From the NCBI RefSeq assembly GCF_000315625.1, contig NW_005434637.1, forward strand, positions 122,671-186,670: a DNA stretch of 64,000 nucleotides, read 5' to 3'. The notes beneath the pieces are model-generated. The model was given only the letters and a program-made list of their open reading frames with translations, had not been told where the DNA came from and ran no database searches. Position 1 is the first letter of the stretch. Each line of letters opens with the position of its first letter. This stretch comes from Guillardia theta CCMP2712. Taxonomy: Eukaryota > Protista > Cryptophyta. Below, piece after piece: positions 21,914 to 36,158 of the stretch. A program made the position numbers and the translations under genes.

Positions 21914-22181
21914 TTTCGAGGAATCGAGCTTGCGTTCTTACCAAGTCGAGTCATTCCCTTCCCTTGCGTTGTTACCATGGGATAAAAGAAAACAATATGA
22001 AGAAGTCAAGGACAACTGACGACAGAACTGTTGTATGCTAGAGTGCAAATCAGTGCAAATCAGTGCAAATCAGTGCAAATCAGTGCATCTGCGTTGGTCA
22101 ACTCCTCCATTCATTTCATGTCCTTGTACGACCATGTCTCTATGGCTCCCAATCTAATTGTTACCCTATTTTCTCGTGAAA

Positions 22182-22262
<81 letters not shown>

Positions 22263-23114
22263 CGCACCTTCTCCTGCTGCTGCTGCTGCTGCAGCAGCAG
22301 CTGCTGCAGCAGCTGCTGCAGCACCTCCTCCTCCTCCTCCTCCTCCTCTCCCCTCTTGAACCTCCAGGCATGGTGCATGAAGCTTCTTGCCATAGCATGG
22401 CACCACCCACTCTCGCAAAGTCGCAAAACGGTCAAAACTATTATCCCTTGCGCACAAGTTGGACCGGACATCCTCCCACCCCCCTGAAGAGCACTTCTTA
22501 CCCACCCCCTTCGCCTGATTGGAATACCCTTTCTCCCCTGTACCCCTGTTTTGGCTGTCATGAAAGGGATACCAGGACCCCCACCCACCCTGGTGTCACT
22601 AAAACTTCGGCAACTGCCCGACTCTCACTGCCGCATTCCTGCCGTAACCACCCCTACCCGTAACCTCCGAATCATGGGAAAACTACCGGTACGAGACCCT
22701 GATGATTTCTGGGACCCAAAACTTGCACGTCCGCCTCAGTAACGGCGAAGCCATACTGAATTTTAACTTAACTTTCAGTGAGGACTCTCGGCTCGGCGGG
22801 TTCTCACAAACCTGTCGGCCCGCCCGGCCCGGGCCCGGCACGAGTGGCACACCGTGACCCGGACATCAGCAAGCACTGAAGGGCGCACAGCGGCAGACAC
22901 ACGGACTCCGGGACTCGAGGCCAACGGCTGGTTGGGTGACTCGACCATATCATAGCACGGTACAAGAGTTCGGACACCCCGTGTCGGACCCGGCATCTCA
23001 AACTCAGTAAGGAGGGACAAATCAGAGTCTCAAATCGAATGATCGCTGTAGATTTCAAACCAACAACAGAGCATGGCATTTGAAAAAACACAACATTGAA
23101 GCCAAACGTACACC

Positions 23115-26100
23115 TTACTGACATAGCACGTTGCGGAAGTTCACGTACTCCTTGTGCACATGCTGCTTCACGGTGTACATCTCCTCTAGCAGCACCTGCC
23201 ACCCCTTGTCACCCCCTCTCCTCCTCTCACCCCCTCCCGCCATCGACCTGGACCTCGCAGATGTGTCGTCGCAGGTTGAGTGTCTCGTCCCATTGCTTAA
23301 GCGGGATGAAAGTGCATGAGCCGTTCTTAGCGTTGACCGTCCATCCTACCTGCCCTCCTCCAGTCACTCCCTCTCCCCTCCTCCTCCGGTTCCCTCTTCT
23401 CTCCCCTCCTCTTCCGCTTCCCGCCAAGTCCCTCCTTTCCTTTCTCCTCTCGTCTCCTCCCTTCCCGCCCCCCCGTTTCTCCTCTCTCTCCCTCTTGCTT
23501 GTCGCACCTCAACACATATGCACAGGTCCCGATACCCTCCGCAAGCTCGAAGATCGTACCTCCTGTCATACCTGCCCTTCAAAGTCATCTCTTCCTTCTC
23601 CTCCTCTCTCTCCCCTCCCCTCCCTTTCCCCTTCCTCTGACCTGTTCTTGATGCTCGTGATGTTCAAGTACACCCCGTCACCGCGTCCCCCTTTTCCTGA
23701 CTGTACCACACATCCATCACACCCCGCGCAAGCCCCCCCTCTCCTCTATCACCTCCACGCCCTGCCGCCTCATCCTTCTCCTCGCTCATCGGCCCGCTTA
23801 GCCCTGCCGCCACCGCCGACATCGACCGCACCTTACTCACCCACTCCAGCACCTCCTCCACCGACTTCACCACCACTGTACACCGCACCAGGTCCGTCAA
23901 GCACGACGGGTCCCGGTGGTACGACCTCACGGTCTTCTGGATGGCTCGCTCGCAGGACTTCACCTTCCCGTGCTCCGTCCTACCCACGGGGTTCCACCCG
24001 CTTACCCAAAGCTGGAACGCCGCGCTCACCTCGTGTGCTTCCTCGAACAGCTTCTCCAGGCTCTTGCTCTCCTGCCGGATCTTCTTGCTCCTCACCGAGT
24101 ACCGCGACGCCCGCTTGCCCATCGCCCTTGACCGCACCCTCTCCCACAAGCCCCCCTCCCGTCTACTCCATGCCCCGAGCTTCTGCGAGATCTCCAGCAC
24201 TTCCCTGCTGATCTCCTCCAGCTTGTCCGTTGACGAGGACACGACCTTGCTCCAGGTCTTCTCGAAGCCTTCCATCGCCGCACTGAGATCCTTATACGTC
24301 TGCCGGTACGACAGCGAGTACTTCACGACGATGACGATGACGATGATCCAGCAGATGATTCCCACCACCAAGAATATCGGCCTGATGTTCTCCCGTATCG
24401 TGAGGCCGTCTCTGATGCAGTAAGCTCCTTGCAGCACAAACACTACGATCCAGGCATAATGCTGCATGAAGTGCACAAAGTACAGCACGATCGAGACGCA
24501 TGCTATCAGTATGAACGACGACAGCCCGATACCAGTCGGCCATGAAACAGCATGCTTTGCATCGAACTGGATGAAGTCCGAAGTCAACGAGATGATCTTC
24601 AGCCATACAATCAGATGTCCGGATCCTACCAAGACACGCTTGGCGTTCAAGGGCGTGCTATACCTACACGTCACGATCGCAGACAGATACAGCGTACCCC
24701 ATAGGAAGGCAAGGAAGGAGTCGATCACTTTCGACACTTGCACCGTCCTCGGTGTGAGGGACTCGTTTGTTGCAGGATCTGTGATCCAGATAGAGGTCCC
24801 TTCTAACATCCGCTGTACCATCACTGCCCCGAACAAGAGCTGGATCACTCCTTCAAACGCGATGCAGCACTGCGCGGGCGTCTTCAGCAGCGCTGTCTCC
24901 AGCGCGTTGCTCGACCTCAGCGCTAGTATCCCGTCCACGTCGTCGTCCCGGTACACTCGCAGCCTCGTGTTCAACGGCAGGAAACGCTCGTCCTCCGCAC
25001 AGCCCCTCACCATCTCCCCTATCGCCTTCACCGCCTCGTCGTAGAAAGCCTCCTTCGCTCTGTTGATCCCCTCGCACGTCCCCTCGCAGTCCTCGCACGC
25101 CCTCGCCCTGCTCGTCGACGTCATCGTGCTCACAGCTGACAGCCGGTCAAGCGAGTCGATACTCCGCAGCGCAAAGAACTCGTGCAGCAGCTCGTACGTC
25201 TTCGTCTCTCGCAGCACCTGCAGCATCTCTATCCCCCGTGGGTTGTGCTTCTCGAAGTGCCATACCTGCCCTGCTATCTGGGCCCTCAGCTCCTTCACAA
25301 GATGCTCCTTCAGCATCCCCCCCGCTTCCTCCGCGCTCCTCCTCACGTCCTGCTCCTTGCCCACCAGGTACACCCCGCATGCTCCGCTCACTGCCTCCGG
25401 ACAAGCCTCAAGCCCTAGGCTCCCCCGGCTCGTGCATGACAGCAGCCTCACCACCGCGTCTCGCACAGACACGCTCCTCAGATACCCCAGCAGCTTCTCC
25501 CGCTCCTCCTTCACTCCCGCCCCCTGCAGAAGTCCGCACGCCCTCTCGCTGTTCACCCCCGACCCCCTCCCGCTCAGCCTCTCCACTGCCTCCCTCAGCG
25601 ACACGTGCCCTCCTCCCTCGTCTCGCAGGATCGGTAGCACAAGCCTCGCCCTCCCGGCCTTCTTCTCCAGCAGGTAGATCATCGCCAGCGCAAGCTGCAA
25701 GAAGTCGTCCTCCCTGTCCGCCTCCTCCCGGATCCCTTCCAGCAGCCCCAGCACGCTCGTCACTCTCCCCCACGTGATCACCGGCACGAACATGGTGCAG
25801 TTGCACACGAACCTCTCCTTGCTGAAAGCCTGCCGGTTCACAGACAGGTACGAGATGCAGTCCACGTCCAGGTATGTCTTCTGAGCGTAGATCTTGAAGA
25901 GCCACGCCTCCTCCTCCTCCAGCTCCTCGTGCACCACCCGATGCAGCTCGTCCCGCGAACGCCTGCTCGTCGAAGCCCCCCCGCTCGCCCCCGGGCCCTC
26001 CCGGCAGGGGTCGGAGGCGATCGGCTTTCTTGGTGGGGTGCCAGCGGAGGATGAAGAAGTGCACGTTATCGTCGTGGGTCTGGAGGGAGTGCTGGGATCT

Positions 26101-26160
26101 GCGCTGGAGGACGGTGAGGCGGGAGGGCTGCTTGAACCGAGCGAGAAGCTTGGAGCTCAT
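23115..26160 (-). CDS. TIR-like/SAM-like/6TM/RelA-SpoT-like protein, copy 1 (1-bp insertion at ~25953: pseudogene or sequencing error)
   Basis: Five exons; KVKSCERAIQK, LTDLVRCTVV, IKNR, GGYRDL, HICEVQV, HKEY motifs; frameshift relative to copies 2 and 3. Confidence 0.8.
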
Positions 26161-27590
26161 TGCGGCTCAGAGATTATAAGGTTAGTTGCGTTGTTTGAAG
26201 ACAGATATTTTCTGTCACTCGCGCCCAATCGGGATCATCTTTGGGTTAAACACCGAGCCTCAAGGTCTTCGGGTATGTGTAAAGAGCCGAAGGTCATTGC
26301 GAGGAGCTGAAGCGAAGGGAGATCCTTATCAGTATAAGAGGAGCAGGGTAGGAGAGCATGCGAAGGGGAGAAGGCAAGGAAGATGCGGAAGATGGGAGGG
26401 GACGAAGACAAGGGGATGTTGGAGGAAGCCGAGGCGGACAAGGAAGGGTAGAGGAGAGCAGNNNNNNNNNNNNNNNNNNNNNNNNNNNNNNNNNNNNNNN
26501 NNNNNNNNNNNNNNNNNNNNNNNNNNNNNNNNNNNNNNNNNNNNNNNNNNNNNNNNNNNNNGGTGGGGAGGAGGGAGGGTGAAGGGATGTTAGAGCAAGG
26601 AGGTGAAGTAGAGAGGGGGAGGAGTGAGGAATGGAGGAGACGTTCTGGGGGATAAAGAGATGGTAGGGTGGGTGGTGTGGCTCATGTAGGTGCTTCAAAG
26701 GGGGTCCTCAGTGTGAATCAGGGAGGGGTCTACTTGATTGGATGGGGTCGGGTGCGGGCTTATGATTTGATATATATATATATATATATATATATTAAAC
26801 ACAAACAACTTACTTATAAAACATACGGAAAATGCGTTGCTTACTATAACTTGTTTTAGTATTATTTTTGAATGCCAACATTTGAGGAGATCTCCTTTTA
26901 TTTTCAAAAGTTATAAATAAGTTTCAACTATTGTCCACCCGGTTGCTACAGATCTTTACAACTGATCGCATCCAATCCTCAAAAAAACAGACTGAAGGGG
27001 GTGGGGTCCTCTTTCCTCGCCCCTCTGGGGTGGGTCAGAAAGTTAAGTAGCTAGAGGGGGGTGGGTAGGATGGTCCGCTGCAAGTCAATTACCGGAACCC
27101 TGCCATGGCATGATGTGAAAGGACTCTCATGCTCGTCCGGCGCCGCTCTTCTAGTGACGGCTCAGTCCCTGAGGACCAGCAGCAAGCACTTGACCAACCG
27201 AGCCTCCGCCAGAGATCGATGCTCGAGTCTTGTACTTGTGCCGCGGGAGGAAGGATAGCGGTAGGGGTCTGGAGGCCTCTTCAGCCATGCTGGCCCGCGG
27301 ACTGGCACCACGATGAGCCCTGCATGACCTGAGACATCACGACCAAACCATATGTAAGGAGATCACAGGAATGATGTTCAGCCTGCAACTCTTTCTATGA
27401 TCCCTTGAAGCCACCGATAGAATGTAGAACGGCAGGAAGGAACAACTCAGCTGAACCCTAACGATACAGACAAGCATAACGCGTTGCTCTACGCGGCACA
27501 ACGAGCCATTTCCCCTCACCCAGTCACACTGTACGTATCTCAAGAGCCTTAAGGCAACATAACTTTATTCCCCAGACTCAAACTGACATC

Positions 27591-30500
27591 TTACTGACAT
27601 AGCACGTTGCGGAAGTTCACGTACTCCTTGTGCACATGCTGCTTCACGGTGTACATATCCTCTAGCAGCACCTGCCACCCCTTGTCACCCCCTCTCCTCC
27701 TCTCACCCCCTCCCGCCATCGACCTGGACCTCGCAGATGTGTCGTCGCAGGTTGAGTGTCTCGTCCCATTGCTTAAGCGGGATGAAAGTGCATGAGCCGT
27801 TCTTAGCGTTGACCGTCCATCCTACCTGCCCTCCTCCAGTCACTCCCTCTCCCCTCCTCCTCCGGTTCCCTCTTCTCTCCCCTCCTCTTCCGCTTCCCGC
27901 CAAGTCCCTCCTTTNNNNNNNNNNNNNNNNNNNNNNNNNNNNNNNNNNNNNNNNNNNNNNNNNNNNNNNNNNNNNNNNNNNNNNNNNNNNNNNNNNNNNN
28001 NNNNNNNNNNNNNNGTCCCCTCCCTTCCCGCCCCCCCGTTTCTCCTCTCTCTCCCTCTTGCTTGTCGCACCTCAACACATATGCACAGGTCCCGATACCC
28101 TCCGCAAGCTCGAAGATCGTACCTCCTGTCATACCTGCCCTTCAAAGTCATCTCCTCCTCCTCTCTCTCCCCTCCCCTCCCATTCCTCTGACCTGTTCTT
28201 GATGCTCGTGATGTTCAAGTACACCCCGTCACCGCCCTCCCCCCTTCCTGACTGTACCACACATCCATCACATCCCGCGTAAGCCCCCCCTCTCCTCTAT
28301 CACCTCCACGTCTCCTGCCGCCTCATCCTTCTCCTCGCTCATCGGCCCGCTTAGCCCTGCCGCCACCGCCGACATCGACCGCACTTGCCTCACCCACTCC
28401 AGCACCTCCTCCACCGACTTCACCACCACTGTACACCGCACCAGGTCCGTCAAGCACGACGGGTCCCGGTGGTACGACCTCACGGTCTTCTGGATGGCTC
28501 GCTCGCAGGACTTCACCTTCCCGTGCTCCATCCTCCCCACGGGGTTCCACCCGCTCACCCAAAGCTGGAACGCCGCGCTCACCTCGTGCGCTTCCTCGAA
28601 CAGCTTCTCCAGGCTCTTGCTCTCCTGCCGGATCTTCTTGCTCCTCACCGAGTACCGCGACGCCCGCTTGCCCATCGCCCTTGACCGCACCCTCTCCCAC
28701 AAGCCCCCCTCCCGTCTACTCCATGCCCCGAGCTTCTGCGAGATCTCCAGCACTTCCCTGCTGATCTCCTCCAGCTTGTCCGTTGACGAGGACACGACCT
28801 TGCTCCAGGTCTTCTCGAAGCCCTCCATCGCCGCACTGAGATCCTTATACGTCTGCCGGTACGACAGCGAGTACTTCACGACGATGACGATGACGATGAT
28901 CCACGAAATAACGCCAAGAACGACAAACATCGGCTTGGTGTTCTCCCGTATTGTGAGCCCGTCTCTGATGCAGTAAGCTCCTTGCAGCACAAACACTACG
29001 ATCCAGGCATAATGCTGCATGAAGTGCACAAAGTACAGCACGATCGAGACGCATGCTATCAGTATGAACGACGACAGCCCGCTACAACCCGGCCATGAAA
29101 CAGCATCCTTTACATCGCACTGAATGAAGTCCGAAGCCGATGAGATGATCTTCAGCCATACAATCAGATGTCCGGATCCTACCAAGACACGCTTGGCGTT
29201 CAAGGGCGTGCTAAACCTACACGTCACGATCGCAGACAGATACAGCGTACCCCATAGGAAACTCAGAAATGAGTCGATCACTTTCGACACTTGCACCGTC
29301 CTCGGTGTGAGGACCTCTTTTGTTTCGGGAAATTGCATCCAGATTGTGTGCCCTTCTAACATCCGCTGTACCATCACTGCCCCGAACAACAGCTGCGTAA
29401 TTCCAGCAAACGCGATGCAGCACTGCGCGGGCGTCTTCAGCAGCGCTGTCTCCAGCGCGTTGCTCGACCTCAGCGCTAGTATCCCGTCCACGTCGTCGTC
29501 CCGGTACACTCGCAGCCTCGTGTTCAACGGCAGGAAACGCTCGTCCTCCGCACAGCCCCTCACCATCTCCCCTATCGCCTTCACCGCCTCGTCGTAGAAA
29601 GCCTCCTTCGCTCTGTTGATCCCCTCGCACGTCCCCTCGCAGTCCTCGCACGCCCTCGCCCTGCTCGCCGACGTCATCGTGCTCACAGCTGACAGCCGGT
29701 CAAGCGAGTCGATACTCCGCAGCGCAAAGAACTCGTGCAGCAGCTCGTACGTCTTCGTCTCTCGCAGCACCTGCAGCATCTCTATCCCCCGTGGGTTGTG
29801 CTTCTCGAAGTGCCATACCTGCCCTGCTATCTGGGCCCTCAGCTCCTTCACAAGATGCTCCTTCAGCATCCCCCCCGCTTCCTCCGCGCTCCTCCTCACG
29901 TCCTGCTNNNNNNNNNNNNNNNNNNNNNNNNNNNNNNNNNNNNNNNNNNNNNNNNNNNNNNNNNNNNNNNNNNNNNNNNNNNNNNNNNNNNNNNNNNNNN
30001 NNNNNNNNNNNNCTCGCACAGACACGCTCCTCAGATACCCCAGCAGCTTCTCCCGCTCCTCCTTCACTCCCGCCCCCTGCAGAAGTCCGCACGCCCTCTC
30101 GCTGTTCACCCCCGACCCCCTCCCGCTCAGCCTCTCCACTGCCTCCCTCAGCGACACGTGCCCTCCTCCCTCGTCTCGCAGGATCGGTAGCACAAGCCTC
30201 GCCCTCCCGGCCTTCTTCTCCAGCAGGTAGATCATCGCCAGCGCAAGCTGCAAGAAGTCGTCCTCCCTGTCCGCCTCCTCCCGGATCCCTTCCAGCAGCC
30301 CCAGCACGCTCGTCACTCTCCCCCACGTGATCACCGGTACGAACATGGTGCAGTTGCACACGAACCTCTCCTTGCTGAAAGCCTGCCGGTTCACAGACAG
30401 GTACGAGATGCAGTCCACGTCCAGGTATGTCTTCTGAGCGTAGATCTTGAAGAGCCACGCCTCCTCCTCCTCCAGCTCCTCGTGCACCACCCGATGCAGC

Positions 30501-30712
30501 TCGTCCGCGAACGCCTGCTCGTCGAAGCCCCCCCGCTCGCCCCCGGGCCCTCCCGGCAGGGGTCGGAGGCGATCGGCTTTCTTGGTGGGGTGCCAGCGGA
30601 GGATGAAGAAGTGCACGTTATCGTCGTGGGTCTGGAGGGAGTGCTGGGATCTGCGCTGGAGGACGGTGAGGCGGGAGGGCTGCTTGAAGAGAGCGAGAAG
30701 CTTGGAGCTCAT
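27591..30712 (-). CDS. TIR-like/SAM-like/6TM/RelA-SpoT-like protein, copy 2 (~900 aa)
   Basis: Exons 30712-28304, 28251-28193, 28134-28071, 27825-27724 and 27671-27591 splice in frame at GT-AG sites; one N gap in exon 1. Confidence 0.85.
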
Positions 30713-32102
30713 TGCGGGCTCAGAGATTATAAGGTTAGTTGCGTTGTTTGAAGAGAGATATTTTCTGTCACTCGCGCCCAATCGGGATCATCTTTGGGTT
30801 AAACACCGAGCCTCAAGGTCTTCGGGTATGTGTAAAGAGCCGAAGGTCATTGCGAGGAGCTGAAGCGAAGGGAGATCNNNNNNNNNNNNNNNNNNNNNNN
30901 NNNNNNNNNNNNNNNNNNNNNNNNNNNNNNNNNNNNNNNNNNNNNNNNNNNNNNNNNNNNNNNNNNNNNNNNNNNNNGGCAAGGAAGATGCGGAAGATGG
31001 GAGGGGACGAAGACAAGGGGATGTTGGAGGAAGCCGAGGCGGACAAGGAAGGGTAGAGGAGAGCAGGGCAAGGAGGGAGGGAGAGAGAGAACGCGGCGTG
31101 AAGGATGTGGAGGATGTAGATAATGGAAAGATTGGGGAGGGTGGGGAGGAGGGAGGGTGAAGGGATGTTAGAGCAAGGAGGTGAAGTAGAGAGGGGGAGG
31201 AGTGAGGAATGGAGGAGGAGACGTTCTGGGGGATAAAGAGATGGTAGGGTGGGTGGTGTGGCTCTTGTAGGTGCTTCAAAGGGGGTCCTCAGTGTGAATC
31301 AGGGAGGGGTTTCACTTCATTGGGTGGGGTGGGGCCTGATTGGATGGGGTGGGGTGCGGGGGCTGACCTATTAACTCGATATATATATTTTAAAAACAAA
31401 CAACTTACTTTTAAAATAGGCTCACTAAAACTGGTTTTAGTAACATCGTCAACCAAGCTTGTTGTTACACATCATTACAACGGACAGGGCAGAAGGGGGT
31501 GGGGTCCTCTTTCCTCGCCCCTCTGGGGTGGGTCAGAAAGTTAAAAGTAGCTGGTCGAGAAGTTGGAGGGGGGTGGGTAGGATGGTCCCCTACAAGTCAA
31601 TAGCCGGAACCCTGCCATGGCATGATGTGAAAGGACTCTCATGCACGTCCGGCGCCGCTCTTCTAGTGACGGCTCAGTCCCTGAGGACCAGCAGCAAGCA
31701 CGTGACCAACCGAGCCTCCGCCAGAGATCGATGCTCGAGTCTTGTGCTTGTGCCGCGGGAGGAAGGATAGCGGTAGGGGTCTGGAGGCCTCTTCTGCCAT
31801 GCTGGCCCGCGGACTGGCATCTTGACGAGCCCTGCATGACCTGAGACATCACGACCAAACCATATGTAAGGAGATCACAGGAATGATGTTCAGCCTGCAA
31901 CTCTTTCTATGATCCCTTGAAGCCACCGATAGAATGTAGAACGGCAGGAAGGAACAACTCAGCTGAACCCTAACGATACAGACAAGCATAACGCGTTGCT
32001 CTACACTAAACATTGAGCCATTCACCCTGACCCAGCAACACTGTAAGTATCTCAAGAGCCTTAAAGCAACATAACTTTATTCCCCAGACTCAAGCTGACA
32101 TC

Positions 32103-35100
32103 TTACTGACATAGCACATTGCGGAAGTTCACGTACTCCTTGTGCACATGCTGCTTCACGGTGTACATCTCCTCTAGCAGCACCTGCCACCCCTTGTCAC
32201 CCCCTCTCCTCCTCTCACCCCCTCCCGCCATCGACCTGGACCTCGCAGATGTGTCGTCGCAGGTTGAGTGTCTCGTCCCATTGCTTAAGCGGGATGAAAG
32301 TGCATGAGCCGTTCTTAGCGTTGACCGTCCATCCTACCTGCCCTCCTCCAGTCACTCCCTCTCCCCTCCTCCTCCGGTTCCCTCTTCTCTCCCCTCCTCT
32401 TCCGCTTCCCGCCAAGTCCCTCCTTTCCTTTCTCCTCTCGTCCCCTCCCTTCCCGCCCCCCCGTTTCTCCTCTCTCTCCCTCTTGCTTGTCGCACCTCAA
32501 CACATATGCACAGGTCCCGATACCCTCCGCAAGCTCGAAGATCGTACCTCCTGTCATACCTGCCCTTCAAAGTCATCTCCTCCTCCTCTCTCTCCCCTCC
32601 CCTCCCATTCCTCTGACCTGTTCTTGATGCTCGTGATGTTCAAGTACAGCCCGTCACCGCCCTCCCTCCTTTGTGACTGTNNNNNNNNNNNNNNNNNNNN
32701 NNNNNNNNNNNNNNNNNNNNNNNNNNNNNNNNNNNNNNNNNNNNNNNNNNNNNNNNNNNNNNNNNNNNNNNNNNNNNNNNNNNNNNNNNNNNNNNNNNNC
32801 CTCGCTCATCGGCCCGCTTAGCCCTGCCGCCACCGCCGACATCGACCGCACTTTNNNNNNNNNNNNNNNNNNNNNNNNNNNNNNNNNNNNNNNNNNNNNN
32901 NNNNNNNNNNNNNNNNNNNNNNNNNNNNNNNNNNNNNNNNNNNNNNNNNNNNNNNNNNNNNNNNNNNNNNNNNNNNNNNNNNCCTTCCCGTGCTCCGTCC
33001 TACCCACGGGGTTCCACCCGCTTACCCAAAGCTGGAACGCCGCGCTCACCTCGTGTGCTTCCTCGAACAGCTTCTCCAGGCTCTTGCTCTCCTGCCGGAT
33101 CTTCTTGCTCCTCACCGAGTACCGCGACGCCCGCTTGCCCATCGCCCTTNNNNNNNNNNNNNNNNNNNNNNNNNNNNNNNNNNNNNNNNNNNNNNNNNNN
33201 NNNNNNNNNNNNNNNNNNNNNNNNNNNNNNNNNNNNNNNNNNNNNNNNNNNNNNNNNNNNNNNNNNNNNNNNNNNNNNNNNNNNNNNNNNNNNNNNNNNN
33301 NNNNNNNNNNNNNNNNNNNNNNNNNNNNNNNNNNNNNNNNNNNNNNNNNNNNNNNNNNNNNNNNNNNNNNNNNNNNNNNNNNNNNNNNNNNNNNNNNNNN
33401 NNNNNNNNNNNNNNNNNNNNNNNNNNNNNNNNNNNNNNNNNNNNNNNNNNNNNNNNNNNNNNNNNNNNNNNNNNNNNNNNNNNNNNNNNNNNNNNNNNNN
33501 NNNNNNNNNNNNNNNNCGCATGCTATCAGTATGAACGACGACAGTCCGCTACATTCCGACGTAAAACCAGCTTCCGATGGATCGCACTGGATGAAGTCCG
33601 AAACCGACGAGATGATCTTCAGCCATACAATCAGATGTCCGGATCCTACCAAGACACGCTTGGCGTTCAAGGGCGTGCTNNNNNNNNNNNNNNNNNNNNN
33701 NNNNNNNNNNNNNNNNNNNNNNNNNNNNNNNNNNNNNNNNNNNNNNNNNNNNNNNNNNNNNNNNNNNNNNNNNNNNNNNCACCGTCCTGGGAATGATGAC
33801 CTCCTTTGTAATAGAATCTTCCATCCAGATTGAGTGCCCTTCTAACATCCGCTGCACCATCACTGCCCCGAACAAGAGCTGGANNNNNNNNNNNNNNNNN
33901 NNNNNNNNNNNNNNNNNNNNNNNNNNNNNNNNNNNNNNNNNNNNNNNNNNNNNNNNNNNNNNNNNNNNNNNNNNNNNNNNNNNCAGCACTGCGCGGGCGT
34001 CTTCAGCAGCGCTGTCTCCAGCGCGTTGCTCGACCTCAGCGCTAGTATCCCGTCCACGTCGTCGTCCCGGTACACTCGCAGCCTCGTGTTCAACGGCAGG
34101 AAACGCTCGTCCTCCGCACAGCCCCTCACCATCTCCCCTATCGCCTTCACCGCCTCGTCGTAGAAAGCCTCCTTCGCTCTGTTGATCCCCTCGCACGTCC
34201 CCTCGCAGTCCTCGCACGCCCTCGCCCTGCTCGCCGACGTCATCGTGCTCACAGCTGACAGCCGGNNNNNNNNNNNNNNNNNNNNNNNNNNNNNNNNNNN
34301 NNNNNNNNNNNNNNNNNNNNNNNNNNNNNNNNNNNNNNNNNNNNNNNNNNNNNNNNNNNNNNNNNNNNNNNNNNNNNNNCATACCTGCCCTGCTATCTGG
34401 GCCCTCAGCTCCTTCACAAGATGCTCCTTCAGCATCCCCCCCGCTTCCTCCGCGCTCCTCCTCACGTCCTGCTCCTTGCCCAACAGGTACACCCCGCATG
34501 CTCCGCTCACTGCCTCCGGACAAGCCTCAAGCCCTAGGCTCCCCCGGCTCGTGCATGACAGCAGCCTCACCACCGCGTCTCGCACAGACACGCTCCTCAG
34601 ATACCCCAGCAGCTTCTCCCGCTCCTCCTTCACTCCCGCCCCCTGCAGAAGTCCGCACGCCCTCTCGCTGTTCACCCCCGACCCCCTCCCGCTCAGCCTC
34701 TCCACTGCCTCCCTCAGCGACACGTGCCCTCCTCCCTCGTCTCGCAGGATCGGTAGCACAAGCCTCGCCCTCCCGGCCTTCTTCTCCAGCAGGTAGATCA
34801 TCGCCAGCGCAAGCTGCAAGAAGTCGTCCTCCCTGTCCGCCTCCTCCCGGATCCCTTCCAGCAGCCCCAGCACGCTCGTCACTCTCCCCCACGTGATCAC
34901 CGGTACGAACATGGTGCAGTTGCACACGAACCTCTCCTTGCTGAAAGCCTGCCGGTTCACAGACAGGTACGAGATGCAGTCCACGTCCAGGTATGTCTTC
35001 TGAGCGTAGATCTTGAAGAGCCACGCCTCCTCCTCCTCCAGCTCCTCGTGCATCACCCGATGCAGCTCGTCCGCGAACGCCTCCTCGTCGAAGCCCCCCC

Positions 35101-35278
35101 GCTCGCCCCCGGGCCCTCCCGGCAGGGGTCGGAGGCGATCGGCTTTCCTGGTGGGCTGCCAGCGGAGGATGAAGAAGTGCACGTTATCGTCGTGGGTCTG
35201 GAGGGAGTGCTGGGATCTGCGCTGGAGGACGGTGAGGCGGGAGGGCTGTTTGAAGAGAGCGAGAAGCTTGGAGCTCAT
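32103..35278 (-). CDS. TIR-like/SAM-like/6TM/RelA-SpoT-like protein, copy 3 (many N gaps)
   Basis: Same start (MSSKLL) and same terminal exons as copy 2; distinct loop sequences. Confidence 0.8.
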
Positions 35279-36158
35279 TGCGGCTCAGAGATTATAAGGT
35301 TAGTTGCGTTGTTTGAAGACAGATATTTTCTGTCACTCGCGCCCAATCGGGATCATCTTTGTGTGAACACCGAGCCTCAAGGTCTTCGGGTATGTGTAAA
35401 GAGCCGAAGGTCATTGCGAGGAGCTGAAGCGAAGGGAGATCCTTATCAGTATACGATCAACAGGGTAGGAGAGCATGCGAAGGGGAGAANNNNNNNNNNN
35501 NNNNNNNNNNNNNNNNNNNNNNNNNNNNNNNNNNNNNNNNNNNNNNNNNNNNNNNNNNNNNNNNNNNNNNNNNNNNNNNNNNNNNNNNNGGAAGGACTTT
35601 AATTTTAAAAACTACATTTTACGCTATAACTATCTAAATTGATTTTATTTATAGAATTGATGAAACGATTTATAAACGAAACGTTTCCTGAAAATGCAAG
35701 ATTGGCGGTCATTTTCACCAATCGAACGACGTACCCACGTCGGGGTAGGACCCTTGGTCAGGTGGGGTATCAAAGGGAATGGTGGGGGGTAGTCAACCAT
35801 CGATGGAGGGGTAGTAACAAGGTCATAAGGATTATGGACATTTTCCCTGAGGTGGGCTGGAGTTTGCTACGTGAGTAAAAAAACAAAGAGGTCGGTATGA
35901 GATGGGATGAGGGTAACCTGGAAGGTTGGGGGTTGAGGGGGATGATGGTGAGGGAATGCCGTTGGTGGTCAACCTACCCCACCCACCCCTACCCCTACAA
36001 ATCAGCGGAGTTACCCCATCGGAGTTCCTCATACCCCCCTTTTCCTCCTCAAAAGTTGACGTGCAAACGGGGTGAGAGGGAGGAATGAAGGGGTAGTGTT
36101 TGACCATCGGGGTGGTGGTGGTGAGGTAGGTCTGAAGGGGGGAGGGTTCACGTCTGAT

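Follow-up and report, generated by a model that had tools for sequence, protein, structure and literature searches.

We analyzed a 64,000-nucleotide stretch of the Guillardia theta CCMP2712 genome (contig NW_005434637.1, positions 122,671 to 186,670, hereafter called the window; coordinates below are those of the window). Repeat analysis revealed three direct repeats at 23103-35367 with a start-to-start spacing of 4.43-4.57 kb. The repeats are three paralogous genes, all on the minus strand, and each copy consists of one long and four short exons. An initial annotation of this DNA, made from the letters alone, had described three tandem five-exon genes encoding a protein of ∼900 residues. Both statements held up: the repeats are direct, the RNA joints described below confirm the five-exon structure, and copy 2 comprises 904 codons. 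The encoded protein is predicted to have an N-terminal TIR fold, a degenerate SAM-like region, six hydrophobic segments and, at its C-terminus, a RelA/SpoT-type synthetase domain.

Exons were located by mapping the public models onto the window, the short exons were translated singly, and searches started from the public spliced models P0001, P0003, and P0004. Copy 1 (GUITHDRAFT_109014) occupies 23115..26160 on the minus strand and contains no internal gap; its exons are 26160-23753, 23700-23642, 23571-23508, 23349-23248, and 23195-23115, with the stop codon at 23117-23115. Copy 2 (GUITHDRAFT_109015; 27591..30712, minus strand) is the best-preserved copy, with exons at 30712-28304, 28251-28193, 28134-28071, 27825-27724, and 27671-27591. 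Its length (803+41+34+26 = 904 codons) applies provided that a run of 105 N in exon 1 is true to length. Copy 3 spans 32103..35278 on the same strand, with the start codon at 35278 and the last exon at ∼32183-32103; we found no public gene model for this copy. The public models match the long minus-strand open reading frames (ORFs) at 99% for GUITHDRAFT_109014 (P0001, copy 1) and 85% for GUITHDRAFT_109015 (P0003, copy 2), the latter value being lowered because the model skips an assembly gap. Model P0003 also runs beyond the conserved stop into an extra exon of 57 residues (window 27154-27324, repeated at 31666-31836). This extension is probably a modeling artefact, since the other paralogs and all homologs stop at Leu-Cys-Gln.

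All four introns are of the GT..AG type. They measure 52, 70, 158, and 52 nt in copy 1; in copy 2, intron 2 is 58 nt long and intron 3 contains a gap. The splice junctions were checked by comparing RNA reads and transcript contigs with the synthetase stretch of copy 1 (23118..23969). Stranded raw RNA reads (X19) showed two of the joints (23193/23246 and 23347/23506), and the reads over the 3' exons came from one strand only. All four joints were present in a single record among transcript contigs from three further runs. At position 23181 in exon 5 the RNA reads were divided 19 vs. 13 between the letter of copies 1 and 3 (Glu) and that of copy 2 (Asp); therefore at least two copies are transcribed. 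The transcript contigs join a copy-2-type exon 1 end to a copy-1-type exon 2 (window 23700-23765), and copy 1 is short of 2 nt near 23760 compared with copy 2. The mixed type of these contigs suggests small errors in the copy 1 reference, a strain difference, or chimeric contigs.

The synthetase domain of copy 2 (27594..28645, minus strand) is encoded by the end of exon 1 and exons 2-5 and is of the RelA/SpoT type, most like Tas1 and the small alarmone synthetases (SAS). Its motifs are GKVKSCERAIQK at 28522-28487, LTDLVRCTVVV at 28453-28421, GGYRD in exon 3, HICEVQ in exon 4, and HKEYVNFRN in exon 5. In copy 1 the domain lies at 23118..23969 (minus strand), with GKVKSCERAIQK at 23969-23934, LTDLVRCTVVV at 23900-23868, and the other motifs in exons 2-5. 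An exhaustive search with the complete paralog P0004 returned 173 relatives of many architectures, most of which match only residues ∼680-896. We aligned 33 homologous enzyme domains (alignment A3) and found invariant columns for Lys, Arg, Lys, Arg, Asp, Arg, Arg, Glu, and Gln. The A3 columns align to the motifs of Tas1 and YwaC, and all invariant catalytic-motif residues are kept in the window exons; the set comprises the Lys/Arg helix, the Asp-x-x-Arg strand, the Gly-Tyr-Arg motif, and the Glu-x-Gln strand. When the A3 profile was compared with the PDB, it matched Tas1 (6OX6) at E 6e-8 and YwaC weakly, across the Gly-Tyr-Arg motif. In a single-sequence PDB search the Tas1 match was non-significant (E 2.4), and significance was reached only with a profile.

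A link to the Pfam family was provided by other members. Seven of the 33 aligned domains touch PF04607, and a G. theta paralog on contig C1, which aligns to the A3 family profile at E 7e-26, passes Pfam RelA_SpoT (PF04607) with 35.4 bits vs. a cut-off of 27. Among the RSH-like (RelA/SpoT homolog) ORFs of G. theta only the C1 ORF reaches this threshold. The fold was examined with AlphaFold and Foldseek, as the initial annotation had proposed, and the C-terminal domain modeled as an RSH synthetase (pLDDT 84.6). The top Foldseek matches were all SAS, Rel, or Tas1 (E 1e-5). In the VIA comparison all top rows were RSH synthetases, led by RelQ at Z 14.8 (root-mean-square deviation, rmsd, 2.4 over 145 residues); CapRel scored Z 11.3 and Tas1 Z 10.8 with 24% identity, vs. 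only ∼7 for Pol X nucleotidyltransferases. Because of the profile match to Tas1, the fold match, and the paralog bridge to Pfam RelA_SpoT, the predicted placement of the C-terminal domain in the RSH synthetase superfamily is well supported. The catalytic motifs of the window copies read as intact, and the predicted activity is the transfer of pyrophosphate from ATP to a 3'-OH acceptor.

It might be argued that the domain is a pseudo-enzyme or a nucleotide-binding module that regulates or scaffolds the membrane part, possibly a channel or transporter. The membrane domain has conserved polar residues and matches no known family, and the window protein falls below the Pfam cut-off, both of which would fit. 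However, every catalytic-motif column is invariant in 33 diverged homologs, which is unexpected for a dead enzyme, and we regard this explanation as rather unlikely. Neither the window ORFs nor four full-length models yielded anything but noise in Pfam; the 33 domain homologs were without a match in PADLOC and NCBIfam scans, and no antitoxin-like part was seen.

In bacteria, RSH enzymes are known as stress and toxin enzymes; in eukaryotes they are known as plastid proteins. The absence of HD, TGS, and ACT domains and of a plastid leader, stated in the initial annotation, was found again here: the window proteins had no Pfam match to any of the three domains, and no leader was seen, the N-terminus being without a hydrophobic signal and not conserved among the paralogs. 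The plastid RSH1-4 proteins of plants and algae belong to the same enzyme superfamily, and G. theta has two such genes (on contigs C47 and C24); the window proteins lack all the features that set these apart, namely the HD hydrolase, the TGS/ACT or EF-hand domains, and the plastid leader. A plastid RSH reading was rejected on the lack of HD, TGS, and ACT and on the presence of these canonical RSH genes elsewhere in the genome. A related proposal is a membrane-anchored housekeeping enzyme of nucleotide metabolism, for example on an organelle membrane, with no receptor role. The complex plastid membranes of G. theta and the Ser/Lys/Arg-rich N-terminus of copies 1-3, which was poorly modeled, could be taken in its favor, whereas the non-conserved N-terminal leader, the dozens of divergent paralogs with variable loops, and the canonical HD-bearing RSH genes already present on C47 and C24 fit it poorly. 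We consider a housekeeping role quite improbable.

The TIR-fold domain of copy 2 lies at 29843..30616 (minus strand, about aa 33-290). Its strand motifs are HFFILRW (30613-30593), FVPVITWG (30343-30320), and LVLPILRDE (30196-30170). A model of residues 1-470 was of middling quality (pLDDT 68.9). The VIA comparison of residues ∼33-290 returned TIR domains in all of the top 22 rows (Z 11.1-8.1, ∼150 residues), including L6, RUN1, SNC1, RPP1, and SPARTA; flavodoxin folds reached at most 7.9, and SARM1 stood at rank 25 (Z 7.7). Foldseek alone was not significant for the N-terminal model (E 0.018), and the N-terminal profile gave only chance ribosomal matches in the PDB. The window family has no Pfam TIR or TIR_2 match. 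It aligns to P0041, an environmental homolog with a TIR_2 match of 34.2 bits, at an hhalign E of 1e-10 over 290 columns; the aligned part starts at the second TIR strand and reaches the juxtamembrane motif. The relatives P0041 and P0062 both pass Pfam TIR_2 and have SAM_1 matches at the corresponding place. On the model and the alignment to P0041, the N-terminus is assigned a TIR fold.

The TIR-like N-terminus of the initial annotation is upheld as a fold, with a Z of 11 to the plant TIRs L6 and RUN1. In the hydrophobic-x-Glu-hydrophobic motif (DDFLQLAL in copy 2, 30262-30239, minus strand) the Glu column reads Leu, preceded by Gln, in the window copies; other paralogs have His there. Glu is kept in this column by P0041, P0027, and P0013 (alignment A4 and the P0041 alignment), and from known TIR motifs we take it to be the catalytic TIR Glu. 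With Leu standing where catalytic TIRs have Glu, the window TIR would more probably serve as a scaffold than act as an NADase. In copy 2 the stretch 29429..29806 (minus strand) holds a degenerate SAM-like helical region, from HNPRGIEML (29800-29774) onward, and a conserved juxtamembrane motif from DERFLPLN to ETALLKTP (29545-29429). For the proposed SAM-like part, half-domain matches were found at the same place in relatives, all of them sub-threshold. The matches cover model positions ∼5-56 of 64-66, mostly 5-45, corresponding to the first half of SAM_1/SAM_2. The SAM call for the window proteins is weak.

The membrane domain of copy 2 (28877..29428, minus strand, about aa 429-612) has six hydrophobic segments by hydropathy, in agreement with the six helices first proposed. 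With six segments both soluble ends lie on the same side, and both protein ends should be cytosolic. We found no Pfam or PDB relative of this domain; single weak matches to SLATT_6, MASE4, and Peptidase_M50 were treated as noise. The domain keeps polar residues, among them two invariant Gln. A helical linker (28643..28876, minus strand, about aa 613-690) leads from the last membrane helix to the enzyme domain and includes helix 16-37 of the C-terminal model. Copies 1 and 2 are 99% identical, and their codon differences are unevenly distributed: 2 in codons 1-361, ∼41 in codons 362-529, and ∼7 in codons 530-725. The differences cluster in codons 362-393, 450-470, and 511-529, which are alternate loops of the membrane domain; the divergent stretch is 24350-24880 in copy 1 and 28900-29430 in copy 2. 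In P0041 the first corresponding loop, after the membrane helix, holds an F5/8-type-C (discoidin) domain. The discoidin domain supports an outward-facing, ligand-binding side for these putative loops.

The genes belong to a large family. The genome-wide paralog count suggested at the outset gave about 15 full-length paralogs in G. theta, and the enzyme profile gave at least 171 exon-level matches, spread over some 60 or more genomic sites. The RSH-like matches often lie in intron-poor ORFs of 1000-1500 codons (e.g., L013 2646-7001, L014 2636-6019, L015 1490-4546, and L016-L018), several of which carry two RSH-like domains about 2.1 kb apart. In a second architecture (L008 974-4192 and L009 1043-4255) a Cys-rich, zinc-finger-like N-terminus replaces the TIR fold, the SAM-like, membrane, and RSH-like core is common to both, and the enzyme domain is mostly in one exon. 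The environmental homologs add further partners. P0041 has the order TIR_2, SAM_1, membrane helix, discoidin, Cys-rich stretch, further helices, and RSH-like domain; the Cys-rich stretch may be C-type-lectin-like. P0022 has HEPN_DZIP3 and a protein kinase in place of the TIR, followed by SAM, six helices, and an RSH-like domain. A word-based search of the enzyme region found cryptophyte relatives only. In the ESM Atlas the neighbors were eukaryote-only, with TPR or ankyrin fusions and hints of ciliates, foraminifera, and diatoms. Homologs are conserved to 25-40% identity and include a transcript-derived ortholog in Hanusia phi.

The array is interrupted by assembly gaps, and these were compared with the reading frames. 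The gaps at 26462-26561 and 30878-30977 are intergenic. The gap at 27915-28014 falls within intron 3 of copy 2 and touches no codon; it is written ∼87 nt longer than copy 1 implies (offsets 4476 vs. 4563). Exon 1 of copy 2 contains the 105-N gap (29908-30012). Copies 1 and 2 are offset by 4553 both before and after it, and exon 1 is open across 803 codons with 0 stops; hence the written length fits and the frame is kept. This gap leaves ∼35 residues (about aa 235-269) of the TIR-fold domain of copy 2 unread, and P0003, which takes the gap as an intron, is without those residues. Copy 3 has six internal gaps of about 930 nt in total, and its frame and intactness cannot be judged because the offsets change across them (4425, 4512, and 4566). 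Copy 1 has one extra G at ∼25954 compared with copies 2 and 3, which breaks the frame after codon 69 and sets the first 69 codons apart from a 757-codon ORF. The extra G could be either a real lesion or a homopolymer error. Such a frameshift and the gap-rich copy 3 might indicate decaying pseudogene copies or mis-modeled genes. An artefact of this kind is very unlikely, given the long open exon 1 of copy 2, the presence of spliced transcripts, and the conservation of the homologs, including the one from H. phi.

Tas1 of Pseudomonas aeruginosa is a (p)ppApp-synthesizing toxin delivered by type VI secretion and paired with an immunity protein. Tas1 (6OX6) gave the only significant sequence match of the enzyme domain among solved structures and the highest identity among the structural matches (24% over 141 residues), and its Lys/Arg helix and Asp-Leu-x-Arg strand are nearly identical to those found here. 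It differs in being a secreted bacterial toxin, whereas the window domain is the predicted cytosolic tail of a eukaryotic multi-pass membrane protein. The best fold matches were RelQ and RelP (SAS1/SAS2; 5DED, 6FGK, and 6EWZ) at Z 12.4-14.8 and rmsd 2.4-3.3, with the GYR-type motif and the Glu-x-Gln strand common to both; however, these bacterial enzymes are (p)ppGpp-making tetramers that stand alone, without membrane or TIR parts, and identity is 13-18%. CapRel, FaRel2, and PhRel2 are toxic SAS that act as tRNA pyrophosphokinases in phage defense. The fold is the same (Z 11.3 for CapRel and 7.5 for FaRel2), and CapRel follows the same logic of a sensor part fused to an RSH-type effector. Its sensor, in contrast, is a soluble C-terminal antitoxin-like domain that binds capsid protein, and the PADLOC models are unmatched by the window family. 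The window proteins resemble SARM1 and plant TIR receptors in the TIR fold of the N-terminus, beside which lies the weakly supported SAM-type region; the order in SARM1 is ARM-SAM-SAM-TIR vs. TIR then SAM here, and in the window proteins the catalytic Glu is replaced and the output domain is an RSH synthetase.

Non-plastid RSH domains of eukaryotes have been described in two settings. Divergent eukaryotic SAS ('divRel') were reported in fungi, Dictyostelium, and diatoms (Atkinson et al., 2011; PMC3153485). They resemble the window domain in being non-plastid and synthetase-only, but the name Guillardia has 0 occurrences in that survey, which describes no membrane or TIR fusion. Fungal NLRs may carry an N-terminal RelA_SpoT domain as the presumed effector (Dyrka et al., 2014; PMC4986451). 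As in the window proteins as we read them, a eukaryotic non-plastid RSH-type domain would be the effector of a recognition protein; the fungal proteins differ in being soluble STAND proteins (NACHT/NB-ARC) with repeat sensors, whereas here the sensor part is a six-helix membrane domain and the enzyme is C-terminal. They provide a precedent by analogy for a recognition-coupled RSH domain in eukaryotes. The initial annotation did not recognize the architecture in any described protein, and we likewise found no published description of a TIR, six-helix, and RSH-synthetase architecture in the literature searched.

We propose, with a probability of roughly 45%, that the array encodes cryptophyte-expanded multi-pass membrane proteins that act as receptor-coupled nucleotide pyrophosphokinases in a defense or conflict role. 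In the proposed mechanism, the variable outward loops of the six-helix domain would sense a ligand or a membrane disturbance, and the signal would be relayed through the helix after the last membrane segment, aided by clustering driven by the TIR and SAM parts. The RSH domain would then be switched on and would transfer pyrophosphate from ATP to the 3'-OH of a purine nucleotide. Since the enzyme domain resembles Tas1, an adenosine-type product is our first guess; an alternative acceptor would be the tRNA end, as in CapRel. The cell could thereby raise an alarm in its cytosol or, if infected, stop growing or die. We infer the sensor function, the oligomerization, and the immune mechanism from circumstantial evidence, namely the lineage-specific expansion, the domain shuffling, and the loop-focused divergence.

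The same anatomy would also fit an ordinary environmental or developmental receptor that converts a nutrient, ion, light-linked, or mating cue into a cytosolic second messenger, like the receptor guanylyl cyclases. The array genes are expressed without a known challenge, receptor-enzyme families are often expanded in protists, and the TIR has lost its NADase residue, as might be expected for plain signaling. On the other hand, the nearest sequence relative is a toxin (Tas1), the partners in relatives are conflict domains (TIR_2 and HEPN), and tandem arrays whose divergence is focused on loops are found more typically in recognition repertoires. Plain signaling is possible, and we hold it to be doubtful. 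What tips the balance toward the defense role is the resemblance to Tas1, together with fusion partners of the conflict type, the family expansion, and the divergent loops.

Several points weigh against a defense receptor. The window protein is below every Pfam, PADLOC, and NCBIfam threshold. A dedicated small hydrolase was not found in the genome, HD_4 being confined to the two canonical RSH genes (C47 and C24). Loss of the catalytic Glu deprives the TIR of one classic immune output, and the SAM matches (E 0.003-0.03) occur in 2 of 12 family members, at the same place in relatives. The topology comes from hydropathy only, and an outside position would sit awkwardly with the Arg-rich loop that precedes the last helix. 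The loop changes comprise ∼30 non-synonymous and 13 synonymous codons; because synonymous changes are also present in the loops, the divergence could stem from patchy gene conversion around older divergent patches and not from positive selection. Expansion and domain shuffling occur in ordinary signaling families too.

The combination of an intact-looking Tas1-like RSH domain and a TIR fold on a eukaryotic multi-pass membrane protein, in a greatly expanded family shuffled with conflict-type domains, makes the array worth attention. An active domain would mean that alarmone-type nucleotides could be produced, or RSH toxin chemistry employed, in eukaryotic cytosol under the control of a receptor. 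Eukaryotes would then have reused one more bacterial immune module, and protist antiviral immunity, a little-known field, would gain a testable entry. A wider and more speculative possibility, which we think unlikely as it stands, is that cryptophytes and, judging from where homologs occur, other protists hold a large transmembrane innate-immune repertoire. Its loops or lectin-type inserts would recognize viruses or non-self, and its Tas1-like domain would make (p)ppApp or (p)ppGpp or pyrophosphorylate tRNA, arresting or killing the infected cell. Such a pathway, alarmone-type, non-plastid, and coupled to a receptor, would be without precedent in eukaryotes.

Just downstream of copy 1, at window 22100-22400, we also observed a long low-complexity tract with poly-Leu, Ser-Arg, Ala-Gly, and Glu-Gln runs in all frames.

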